Below are positions 4,410 to 9,029 of a stretch of DNA of 13,701 bases, one piece after another. Under the pieces are notes generated by a model, which made no database searches, was not told where the DNA came from, and saw only the letters and a program-made list of their open reading frames with translations. Source of the DNA: Zygophlyctis sp. KS116 (lineage: Eukaryota > Fungi > Chytridiomycota); assembly GCA_054661495.1 (NCBI GenBank), contig BAAFSQ010000266.1, positions 1-13,701 of the forward strand, in the 5' to 3' direction. The translations under genes and the position numbers were made by a program. The stretch's first letter is position 1. Each line of letters starts with the position of its first letter.

Positions 4410-5930
4410 ATGCAACAAGTGAATGCAATCATGGATTTCTTAAAGGACAAGAGAGTCTGGTGGGAGTATCATAATAATTCATTTTTGGGGGAGAATGGCT
4501 TTTGGGATCTGCATTTTCCTCAAGAATGGAAAGATCCATTGTTGACTCTGGATCAGATGGATTTATTGGACTTGGCTTCATTTGGGACTGAATCTAAAGT
4601 ATTTAATGTAAATTTTAAAAATTTAAAAATAGAAAAATTGGCCTGAATCTCTTACTAATTTTATCCAGCAGTGCTATGCATTGCCTTTAAATAGAGATCT
4701 CTGCGGCGACAGCTTAGGGCTAACAAGTAAATCAATTCACCCTAAATTTAGAATTGAATTTGAAGAATACAATGCAATTGTCTAGAGGAATGTCACCAAA
4801 GAAATTACATGAAGTGGAATCTCTAGGTATTTTTTTCTAATTTATAAATTTTAAGCTGCTCTTGTAAATCATGCATGTCAAGAATCAAACATAAATTTAG
4901 TTTTAGATTTAGGTGCAGGGCAGGGATATTTAGACCTGGCTCTGGCCTATGGTTATGGTAAAACAGTTATCGGAGTTGATGATGATACTATACAGACTCA
5001 TGGTGCGCATAAACGGTCTGTAAAGGCTCTTAGGTTTAAAAGAGATCATAAAATAGGTTCTCTACATTACATAAATAGGAGGATTCATGTCTCGGAATCA
5101 TTTGATTCTTTACTCAATGAATGTTTTCGGACAAAACAAGTTGAAATTCAAAATAAGAATTGGTTATTATGTGGATTGCATACTTGTGGTGATTTGTCTC
5201 CTGCTAGTATTCGTCATTTTTTAGATTCAGATGCTTCAGTTTTAGTAAATGTGTCTTGCTGCTATAATAGACTCACAGAAACGGTACCTCTGGGATACAA
5301 GGATGAACCGAAATTTGAAGAGAATCCAGGATTTCCAATGAGTGGTAATTACTTTAAGAATTTAATTTCAGATTATCTTAAATCATCAAAGATCTATATT
5401 GGCCATTCTGGTCGTTCAACTGCTTGTCAATGTACAATGTAAATAACTTGAATTTATTTTTTAGACGTTGGGCAACTGATCTTGATTCTCTAGATGTATT
5501 TGATCGTCATTTCTATAGAGCTTTATTTCAAAGAGTTGTTATTGATTTCAAGTTATTGGGTGATATTCCAGAAAAAGATATTATCGTTGGACATTTGAGC
5601 CATGGTTCAAAGAATAAAGGCTGGCTAGCTTATTGTTCTTCTATTTTTAAAAAATGGAAGATAGAGGGTCCATCAGATGAAATATTAATGGAGTATTTAG
5701 ACCGCTATAAAAATCTCAAAATACAAGTCTCAATCATTTGGACCATAAGAGCAATGTTGGCTGCATGTCTTGAATCATTGATTTTATTGGATAGATTGAT
5801 ATTCTTGGAAGAATGGAGTAAGCAAAATAATTGTCAATTAAATGTGGAGCTATTGCCTATATTTGATCCCATCATATCTCCAAGAAATATGGCACTCATC
5901 GTCTCAAAACTTGAATCAACTGACCGGTAG
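4410..5930 (+). CDS. METTL25: METTL25/RRNAD1-family SAM-dependent methyltransferase; join(4410..4607,4633..4726,4752..4826,4856..5344,5372..5438,5465..5930), ~462 aa
   Basis: Spliced protein contains WPESL, GMSPKKLHEV, VLDLGAGQGYL, GLHTCGDLS, CCYN, LESLILLDRLIFLEE and IFDPIISPRN. Five GT-AG introns of 25, 25, 29, 27 and 26 nt. Intron 1 has an alternative in-frame donor at 4599. Confidence 0.9.
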
Positions 5931-6108
5931 AGGTATTACTGTATTTTTACCATGGTATTTTCGAGTGAAATAATCAGGCTAAATATTCTTCCATTCATGG
6001 ATATTGCCACACGGAACCTTCCAATGATATTTATAGGACAAATACGCTTAGTGATTCATAAATATGAGGCGGATCGACGAGATGGGCTGACCATCAATAA
6101 ATCAACAA

Positions 6109-7535
6109 ATGAAAACTAAAGGGTTATTTCTTAACCGATTCAATCTGATCAGAGAGCTTGGAGAAGGTTCTTATGGCACAGTTGTCTTAGCAGAGGACAT
6201 TATGAATGAAGACCTTGTTGCTCTTAAAGTTATTCAAAAATCATCAATTTTAAAAATGGCTCACATTAATAGACTCAGAAGAGAGATCAATCTTCTCAGG
6301 CTTCTCAAACATCCAAATGTTGTCCGTCTTTTTGAAGTCATTGTAAGTATATTGTTTATCTGAAATTCAAGGAAACTTTTGATCAGTTGATTTTAGTCAT
6401 GGAATATGTAAATGGGGGGGATTTGTTCGATCTGATCATTGAATCAAAAAGACTGGATGAAAAATTGGCCAGAAAAATATTTCGACAGTTATTTTCAGCA
6501 ATAATGTATTGCCATCATAATATGATGGTGCACAGAGATCTTAAACCTGAAAACTTGCTTCTTGATGAAAATCAAAATCTTAAAATCATTGATTTTGGAT
6601 TTGTCAGGACTTATTCAAAAGATCCTAATTTAACTTTAAAAACTTACTGTGGGTCATTATATTATTGTGCGCCGGAAATGCTGGATGGTACTCCATACCC
6701 AGGTCCATCATCAGATATTTGGAGCTTGGGAGTTATTTTGTATGTTCTGATTAATGGATACTTGCCTTTTAGAGAGACTCAGCTCCCAAAACTGTATGAG
6801 TCTTTGAGAGCCGCAAAGTATGATAGAGGGGAACATTCATCTCCAGGTAAATATTACTTTACTTAATTCAAAGAATGTAATCGACTTATTGAACGAATGA
6901 TTGTTTCAAATCCAGTAGAGAGAATGAGTCTTCAAGATTTAGCAAACGACCCCTGGCTTAATGAAGGATATGACTCAACACCATCCCCATTTTCAGAGTT
7001 AAACAATGACTTGCTCAGATTCAGAGAACAAGTTTCAAAAAAGATTGAAATTCTAGAAAGTCAGGAAGATTCATTAGAACAGGAATTTAAAGAAAACGGA
7101 CTAAAGATTTTGTCTCTGATAATCCCTGTTAGAGATGAAGACATACCCTTGGTGCTGGACAAGGTTGTACGTCGAGCTAGAAGTGAAATATATGAATACC
7201 AATCTGAACCTGTCCCAAAACTATCAGACTTGATTTATCAAGTTGAACCACAGATTCCGAATACTCTGGAAGAAGAAATGGAAAACAATTCAATAGCTTT
7301 AATAGAGGAAAATGAAGCAAATCGCAGAGAATATTGTAGCTGCCCTGTCAGAACAGAGTCATCTAAAAACAGTAGAGAAGAATTTCACATGAATATTGAT
7401 CAAGGAAAAATGAAGGGAAATAACTGGAAACGTAGAATATCAAATTGGTTTCAAAAAGTTGATTCTGTTGCATCTGGATCCGAATCTACTGCTATCAAAA
7501 CCAAGAGAAGATTCTCTTTTTTCCTAAAAAACTAA
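6109..7535 (+). CDS. Ser/Thr protein kinase, CAMK group (AMPK/MARK/Kin1-like); join(6109..6342,6372..6846,6874..7535), 456 aa
   Basis: Motifs GEGSYG, VALK, HRDLKPEN, DFG, TYCGSLYYCAPE, DIWSLG. Introns 6343-6371 (29 nt) and 6847-6873 (27 nt) restore FEVI-ETF and SSPECNRLIERM. Confidence 0.95.
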
Positions 7536-7634: not shown

Positions 7635-8303
7635 ATGCTTGCTACTTCAATCTCTATTCTTCTACTTTCTTCAATTGTCTCTGCCCAAGGAGCATGTGGA
7701 AATGATATCGACTGTCTTTCCAAATTGTCCCAGTATGTAGTTGTTGGTACTGTTTTATCAAACACTAAGAATGATCCCAATTCATCTCCTACTAATTACT
7801 CTGCATCTATCAATGTAAAGTGTGCTTTCCTTAGTTTCTCTTCTACTGGTCCTGATCGAGGTGACAATCTTATTGGAAATTCAATTTCTGTGTCTAAATT
7901 TGGAGGAAGTAACAAGTGCCCACCTGGTTTTAGTGATGCAACCGTTGGATCTACCCAAATCTTCTTTATAGCTGTCGAGTATGTTTTCTTAGAATATTAA
8001 CTTTATAGAACTTTAAGACCGGCAATTGGAGCTCGCATTAATTATCAAGTTGTTGACATTTGTATCGGAGGTCTGGAAACTAGTTCTTCCAATCTTCAAT
8101 CAATTGGAAAGTTAATGTCTGAATATTCTGACAAGGTTATTCCTTTGGAAAATAGAGGAAATGATCCTATCTGTGCTTCTGTTCCGACGAATACGAATAG
8201 TACTCAATCTACTCCAACGTCTAGAAATGAACCAGACTCTGCATCATCTATCGCAATCACATTTGCATTACAAATCCTTGTTTTGTTATTTGTATTGCAA
8301 TAA
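7635..8303 (+). CDS. Secreted, probably GPI-anchored NtA/TIMP-like OB-fold protein, paralog A; join(7635..7978,8009..8303), 212 aa
   Basis: Signal peptide ending VSA-Q, 6 Cys shared with paralog B, Ser/Thr stalk and hydrophobic C-terminus. 30-nt intron 7979-8008 sits at the same position as in paralog B. Confidence 0.85.
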
Positions 8304-8315
8304 AGCTGTTTTACT

Positions 8316-8348
8316 ACGTCATAGACTTCCCACGTCAATGTCTGACGT
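8316..8348. promoter_or_regulatory. Cluster of three ACGTCA (CRE/ATF-like bZIP) motifs
   Basis: acgtca 8316-8321, acgtca 8332-8337 and tgacgt 8343-8348, within a 59-nt intergenic spacer. Confidence 0.5.
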
Positions 8349-8362
8349 TTTGTTTGTTGACA

Positions 8363-9029
8363 ATGAGATCATTCTATCATATGTTACAATTACTAGCCTT
8401 TGCTTCCATTGCATCTGCCCAAACGGCCTGTGGAAATGATTTAGGATGCCTTTCTAAGCTGTCCCAGTATGTGGTTTTGGGGACTGTGGTTTCAAATACT
8501 CTAAATGTTTCTACCAGAGCAAACTATAACGCAACTATTGCAGTTAAATGTGCTTTTATTAGCTTTACTAGAGAAGGTCCTGATCGTGGAGAGAATCTTG
8601 TTGGAAATACCATTAATGTTTCCAAATTTGGAGGCGGAAGTGGATGTCCGGGTGGATTTACCGATGCAATCGTAAACTCTACTCAAATTTTTTTCATCCA
8701 TGTCAGGTACTTTTTCAAGTTTAATGCTTTATAGTAATTATAGACCTGCATTAGGTGTAAAATTAGATTATACTGTTGTGGACATTTGTGTGGGAGGAGT
8801 TATAGCTACTAGCGAATCTCTAAATACGATTGGTCAATTGATGTCTGAGTATCCAGAAAATGTTATTGATAGTAGATTCCGAGGAAATGATCCAGAATGT
8901 CGATTATCAAATTATATTCCAAATCCGAAACCAACAAATAAAGTCGATGATCCCGTAGCTGATGGAGCTGCAAGTTTCCCATGGGCAATCGTGACTGTGG
9001 TCTTTATATTTGCAATCGCTCTTTTATAA
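8363..9029 (+). CDS. Secreted, probably GPI-anchored NtA/TIMP-like OB-fold protein, paralog B; join(8363..8706,8735..9029), 212 aa
   Basis: Clear paralog of 7635-8303 (ACGND.CLSKLSQYVV.GTV, GPDRG.NL.GN, KFGG, STQIFFI, VVDIC.GG, LMSEY, RGNDP.C). 28-nt intron 8707-8734. Start could alternatively be ATG 8381. Confidence 0.85.

Follow-up and report, generated by a model that had tools for sequence, protein, structure and literature searches.

Does a chytrid fungus carry, as a small protein of its own, a relative of the N-terminal (NtA) domain with which animal agrin binds laminin? The question is raised by a 13,701-nt stretch of DNA from Zygophlyctis sp. KS116 (Chytridiomycota; assembly GCA_054661495.1, contig BAAFSQ010000266.1), which we call the window and in which two tandem genes on the + strand, 7635–8303 and 8363–9029, each encode a protein of 212 residues. 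An initial annotation of 7635–9029 described them as tandem paralogs with a signal peptide, a six-Cys domain of ~150 residues, a stalk, a glycosylphosphatidylinositol (GPI)-like tail and a shared intron position, and all of these features are present. It had also proposed a collinearity with agrin NtA. Our analysis places the predicted domain in the superfamily of oligonucleotide/oligosaccharide-binding (OB) folds that contains netrin (NTR) modules and tissue inhibitors of metalloproteinases (TIMPs), with NtA as its nearest structural match.

Predicted fold of the domain

The closest full-length intron-less homologue, P0010 (residues 18–172), was folded with a 52-row alignment (A2) to give a model of the full domain. 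The model (predicted local distance difference test, pLDDT, 92.2; predicted template-modelling score, pTM, 0.87) runs in the order helix, five strands, helix, and the predicted structure of this homologue is the five-stranded OB barrel with N-terminal and C-terminal flanking helices by which the superfamily is recognized. A Foldseek search of the PDB with this model put four agrin NtA entries on top (E 1.5–2.2e-4, probability 1.00, template-modelling (TM) score by target 0.62–0.66), followed by C3 C345C, PCOLCE NTR, meteorin NTR, TIMP-1 and TIMP-3, and agrin NtA is its best structural match by three methods, Foldseek and VIA-align among them. An AlphaFold2 model of the window's own gene 1 exon 1 (7689–7976, pLDDT 82.7) likewise ranks NtA first in Foldseek and VIA-align. 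Its structural alignment covers NtA residues 2–90 at 24–25% identity, against 7–16% for other NTR modules, and this bears out the proposed collinearity. The structural match to NtA/TIMP-like OB folds that the initial annotation had proposed to seek with Foldseek is thereby seen both for the homologue model and for exon 1 of the window.

Other libraries point the same way. A search of the ESM atlas by shape with the P0010 model has an agrin-like NtA cluster among the neighbours (TM 0.60/0.60), and a sequence-only protein-language-model search returned the NtA cluster first (0.90, 169 shared features) and the TIMP and NTR clusters next, its ten best Pfam-bearing matches all lying within one family or clan. 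Since Foldseek, the other structure libraries and the language-model search agree, membership of the modelled domain in the NTR/TIMP-like OB-fold superfamily is well supported; a closer kinship to NtA is indicated consistently across methods, with modest margins. By sequence and secondary structure, the invariant Cys at domain positions 3 and 79 lie where other members of the superfamily have the two Cys of the disulfide between N-terminus and beta3–beta4 loop, and they are a candidate pair.

The ESM-atlas neighbours also comprise vertebrate CCDC3 (TM 0.63), the N-terminal part of neuregulin-2 and a pro-neuregulin-1 isoform (TM 0.57–0.59), as well as several clusters of bacterial hypothetical proteins. 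These neighbours suggest that the NtA-like shape is wider spread than Pfam models show.

Gene structure and transcription

The two genes are composed as follows, all features lying on the + strand.

7635–7978, + strand: gene 1 exon 1, signal peptide and N-terminal two thirds of the NTR/NtA-like domain (open reading frame and translation)
about 7635–7685, + strand: signal peptide within gene 1 exon 1, with predicted cleavage after VSA and mature N-terminus at Gln18
within 7635–7978, + strand: Cys 21, 27, 63 and 95 of gene 1 exon 1 (translation)
7979–8008, + strand: gene 1 intron, 30 nt, phase 2, GTATGT...TTAAC...TATAG, missing from RNA contig X1
8009–8303, + strand: gene 1 exon 2, remainder of the domain with Cys 133 and 170 (translation of 8010–8300 and alignment to the family, A2)
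to 8303, + strand: parts of gene 1 exon 2, namely domain end at ~8174, Asn/Ser/Thr-rich stalk ~8175–8249, hydrophobic GPI-signal-like tail 8250–8300 and stop codon 8301–8303
8363–8706, + strand: gene 2 exon 1, N-terminal two thirds of the domain, with four N-glycosylation sequons
about 8363–8419, + strand: signal peptide within gene 2 exon 1, with predicted cleavage after ASA and mature Gln20
8707–8734, + strand: gene 2 intron, 28 nt, phase 2, set by the reading frame and by analogy with gene 1 and with metagenome locus L004
8735–9029, + strand: gene 2 exon 2, remainder of the domain with Cys 133 and 170
to 9029, + strand: parts of gene 2 exon 2, namely domain end at ~8900, stalk ~8901–8975, hydrophobic tail 8976–9026 and stop codon 9027–9029

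Between the paralogues, identity is 65% in exon 1 (E 1e-45) and 38% in exon 2 (E 2e-21), a match in sequence far beyond chance. Both introns are in phase 2 and interrupt the same codon, the first after a conserved FFIxV motif. Their lengths are taken as 30 and 28 nt because the homologous metagenome loci L004 and L005 have a single AG at the acceptor, the three extra residues being kept there as TFR and TLR, and because an RNA contig from a freshwater metatranscriptome (X1, 493 nt) spans 7767–8289 minus exactly the 30 letters 7979–8008. Longer introns of 39 and 37 nt, with the second AG as acceptor, were considered and are ruled out by L004, L005 and X1.

The RNA evidence consists of assembled metatranscriptome contigs of a near relative, one of which shows a splice, that of gene 1. 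This contig, X1, differs from the window at 8 positions in 493 nt. It covers gene 1 in spliced form, which shows that in a close relative the gene is transcribed and its intron removed as in our model. One of the differences is a G>C change at 8017 that abolishes the alternative downstream AG acceptor, which is consistent with that AG being unused. Gene 2 is covered by contig X3 at 8384–8528 and by X2 and X3 at 8733–8935; the alignment of X2 begins at 8733 with 6 leading letters unplaced, which is compatible with splicing of gene 2 and is not proof of it.

Upstream of the pair, 5400–7535 is occupied by a Methyltransf_32 gene followed by a split gene for a protein kinase whose C-terminus is extended by ~210 residues. 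This neighbourhood recurs in three metagenome contigs of related organisms (L004, L005 and L006), the proteins of L006 being ~99% identical to those of the window.

Protein architecture

Both proteins consist of a signal peptide, the six-Cys domain of ~150 residues, a polar stalk of 25 residues and a hydrophobic C-terminal end of 17 residues. The six Cys of the gene 1 protein stand at positions 21, 27, 63, 95, 133 and 170, a spacing common to about 50 homologues. Cleavage sites were assigned by the small-x-small rule, and a Gln after the predicted site is conserved across the family. In the mature proteins so defined the first Cys would take position 2–12 in 35 members (position 4 in both window proteins), and 5–9 residues separate it from the second. 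Counted from the translations, the charge of the window domains is roughly neutral.

The C-terminal 15 residues of the window proteins have a mean Kyte–Doolittle hydropathy of 2.4 and 2.9, with nothing beyond them, and small residues stand ahead of the hydrophobic end (DSASS in the protein of gene 1, ADGAAS in that of gene 2). Across about 40 family members the same value ranges from 1.5 to 3.0, while family stalks are 21–67 residues long with an S/T/P/G/A/N content of 56–85%. By heuristic rules this is the layout of fungal GPI proteins: signal peptide, S/T/P-rich stalk, small residues and a hydrophobic end free of a cytoplasmic tail.

Distribution and duplication of the family

A word-based search with the exon-1 open reading frame matched exon-1 fragments from metagenomes only, and these fragments sit in syntenic loci that also hold the tandem pair. 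When the exon-1 alignment (A1) was run as a profile, exhaustively, against 1.84 billion representatives, it returned 71 proteins at E<=1e-3, most of them full length (205–250 residues) and with the same six-Cys spacing, stalk and tail. Three of the 71 are repetitive bacterial proteins and were set aside as spurious: P0051 (14 DUF11 repeats), P0075 (RTX) and P0078.

The family ranges over at least six chytrid orders and the Neocallimastigomycota. Its members are found in Boothiomyces macroporosus, Boothiomyces sp. JEL0866, Batrachochytrium dendrobatidis (BATDEDRAFT_35848), Gorgonomyces haynaldii, Rhizophlyctis rosea, Thoreauomyces humboldtii (Spizellomycetales), Entophlyctis helioformis (Chytridiales) and Synchytrium microbalum, and, among Neocallimastigomycota, in Neocallimastix, Piromyces, Anaeromyces and Orpinomyces. 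Every named member is labelled a "hypothetical" or "uncharacterized" protein, and none contains a Pfam domain. Together with empty literature searches, this means that we found no account of the family in fungi, which would have counted against the initial annotation.

On the window itself the family profile matches gene 1 at 7692–8177 (E 4e-41) and gene 2 in exon 1 (E 6.5e-27) and exon 2 (E 4.5e-10). In the source genome (12.7 Mb, 1175 contigs) the family is represented three times, by the window pair and by a divergent, intron-rich copy on contig C17. This third paralogue (about 69406–70192, + strand; L003:1501–2287) is 36% identical over exon 1 and has at least 4 tiny introns; it shares with the pair the signal peptide, six Cys and hydrophobic tail, but its stalk is Gly/Ser-rich.

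A maximum-likelihood tree built on exon 1 joins the window pair to its metagenomic relatives in one nine-row clade (support 98/92), inside which the gene-1 type is a subclade (support 100/96); the duplication is therefore lineage-specific, yet it predates the splits among these relatives. Two Boothiomyces macroporosus members, HK103_007427 and HK103_007428 (P0014 and P0020), have adjacent locus tags and represent another tandem pair. They stand apart from the window pair in the tree, so tandem duplication seems recurrent across chytrid lineages. Two further proteins depart from the common layout. P0079 (Boothiomyces sp. JEL0866, 414 residues) has two complete six-Cys domains, whether as a genuine two-domain protein or because the gene model fuses a tandem pair, and P0076 (Entophlyctis helioformis, 532 residues) has one N-terminal domain and then ~340 residues free of any Pfam match.

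Proposed function and its alternatives

As a whole, these data are best explained, with moderate probability, by a GPI-anchored, glycosylated, stalk-borne NtA-like module that binds protein at the cell surface and is not an inhibitor of the TIMP type. The hydrophobic tail would be a GPI-attachment signal, and on its stalk the glycosylated module would face outward from the plasma membrane or wall of the zoospore or the thallus. There it may bind a protein partner, as NtA and other non-TIMP NTR modules do, and the partner would be tethered or organised in the cell coat or substrate, which would amount to adhesion or matrix anchoring analogous to the way NtA anchors agrin. Zinc-chelating protease inhibition of the TIMP kind would play no part. 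Laminin is an unlikely partner, because none came up in the genome search, itself a weak argument: a Laminin_N search of the genome gave no match, with the control silent too, and is uninformative.

The same layout admits other functions. Signal peptide, small Cys-rich domain, Ser/Thr stalk and GPI-like tail are typical of fungal wall proteins, and the barrel might therefore bind chitin, glucan or a host glycan, or serve as a cross-linked building block of the wall. Binding of heparin or glycosaminoglycans by some NTR modules counts in favour of this idea. Heparin-type binding is nevertheless unlikely, because the window domains are near neutral, unlike the basic, heparin-binding modules of the netrin type; moreover, the ligand of NtA, the nearest relative, is a protein coiled coil, and the top Foldseek and VIA-align matches include no carbohydrate-binding module. 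We consider a structural or glycan-binding wall protein improbable. Much the same holds for a surface-bound metalloprotease inhibitor, in which the domain would block secreted zinc proteases (M36 fungalysins of the fungus itself, or proteases of hosts or competitors) and so protect the cell surface, and to which we attach little probability. Inhibition of M36 enzymes by TIMPs is not known, and a search of the genome for matrixins (M10) found none, while control genomes gave matches. The TIMP mechanism requires Cys1 as a free N-terminus (PMC3439447), set within a Cys-x-Cys ridge; here 1–11 residues precede the first Cys and the second follows at a spacing of 5–9. In no member does the first Cys form the predicted mature N-terminus, which makes inhibition of the TIMP type unlikely, and the absence of this defining feature (PMC3439447) disfavours the inhibitor role that had been suggested at the outset. 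NtA, the closest relative, starts with Asn1 and does not inhibit the matrix metalloproteinases MMP-2, -3, -7, -12, -13 and -14 (PMC3439447). Fungalysin (Peptidase_M36) genes are present at three or more loci of the genome (C828:74–466, C142:20649–21857 and C59:47807–48617).

It should be noted that several points weigh against a surface-displayed, NtA-like binding module. The full-domain model is that of a homologue 39–43% identical to the window exons and not of a window protein, NtA is ahead of PCOLCE NTR by only about 1.3–1.5 Z units, and the signal peptide and GPI signal were called by rules of thumb, not by predictors. Profile searches, in which the window exons were searched separately, were silent. 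With Pfam hmmscan at E<=10 nothing relevant was obtained for the exons of either gene, for nine exon-1 homologues or for ten full-length members, and the curated profiles NTR (PF01759), TIMP (PF00965) and NtA (PF03146) had no match at the same threshold for the exons or the ten full-length members, so the match to these Pfam families that the initial annotation had envisaged did not appear at the level of hidden Markov models (HMMs). The family profiles A1 and A2 gave one chance match (7x5j, E 0.078) and then 0 among all PDB sequences, and the PF03146 HMM gave 0 matches at E<=10 in the whole genome, with control genomes also giving none. By these searches there is no sequence-profile link to NtA, TIMP or NTR, and the case for homology therefore rests on predicted structure and low identity. 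This is the ground for a further explanation, convergence, by which a disulfide-stabilised OB fold evolved independently, the likeness to NtA and NTR is analogy and function is not transferable. OB folds recur widely, and an HMM-level link to animal NTR proteins is missing from Pfam, PDB sequences and 1.84 billion proteins alike; the probability that we give to convergence is low.

Significance

NTR/TIMP modules, and NtA especially, are counted among the components of the extracellular-matrix toolkit of animals. The family described here, expressed and conserved among zoosporic fungi, would move the origin of the module to or before the fungus–animal split, or else expose an old gene transfer. 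A bolder and tentative possibility, which we rate as rather doubtful, is that agrin NtA and the chytrid family are truly homologous and perhaps sister groups. In that case animals would not have invented the module by which agrin is anchored to basement-membrane laminin, and NtA would descend from a stand-alone GPI-anchored surface protein of the common ancestor of fungi and animals. On that view the ligand of the fungal proteins might to this day be a coiled-coil protein of the zoospore coat, in flagellated fungi that include the amphibian pathogen B. dendrobatidis. Our results provide a fold and a testable hypothesis for a set of "hypothetical proteins", among them a putative B. dendrobatidis surface protein, and offer a simple single-domain system in which to ask what NtA-type modules bound before laminin existed.

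Comparison with known systems

Of the known modules agrin NtA (PF03146; PDB 1JB3, 1JC7, 1PXU and 3I70) is the closest in plan. Like NtA, the fungal domain begins with a helix, continues with five strands and ends with a second helix; the positions of Cys2 and Cys74 in NtA are matched by the fungal Cys near the N-terminus and the Cys of the beta3–beta4 loop; and in both the N-terminal residue is not Cys. In contrast to the single N-terminal disulfide of NtA, the fungal proteins have six conserved Cys. NtA is metazoan and heads a large proteoglycan with follistatin repeats, whereas the present family is fungal and its proteins stand alone with a GPI-like tail. NtA binds the coiled coil of laminin gamma-1, while the fungal layout is free of follistatin-like domains and is limited to signal peptide, domain, stalk and tail.

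Likeness to the other modules is lower. The NTR modules of PCOLCE1, meteorin, complement C3/C4/C5 (C345C) and hookworm AceES-2 (PF01759, SMART C345C) show 6–14% identity and no profile match. These modules are C-terminal in multidomain animal proteins, many of them being basic, whereas the fungal domain is N-terminal, the sole domain and near neutral. From the TIMP N-terminal domain (PF00965) the fungal proteins differ in having neither Cys1 at the mature N-terminus nor the Cys-x-Cys motif nor a TIMP C-terminal domain; the N-terminal disulfide is Cys1–Cys70 in TIMP-1 and Cys2–Cys74 in NtA.

In a survey of 388 eukaryotic genomes, netrin/NTR domains outside animals occurred only as single-domain TIMPs, namely in Sphaeroforma, Ectocarpus and some bacteria, while fungi were scored as lacking a netrin domain (PMC3516229, Leclere and Rentzsch 2012). 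In our own searches, clusters of bacterial hypothetical proteins were neighbours of the fungal family both by shape and by language-model features. Like our family, these non-metazoan TIMP-like proteins are stand-alone NTR-type domains (PMC3516229); unlike them, the fungal family is missed by Pfam models, has a GPI-like tail and is nearer to NtA than to TIMP. Our literature search found no paper that ties chytrids to NtA, NTR or TIMP-like domains and none on BATDEDRAFT_35848. Judged by Pfam and by this search, the chytrid proteins are a new family that extends a known superfamily to another kingdom and to a new, stand-alone and GPI-tailed architecture.
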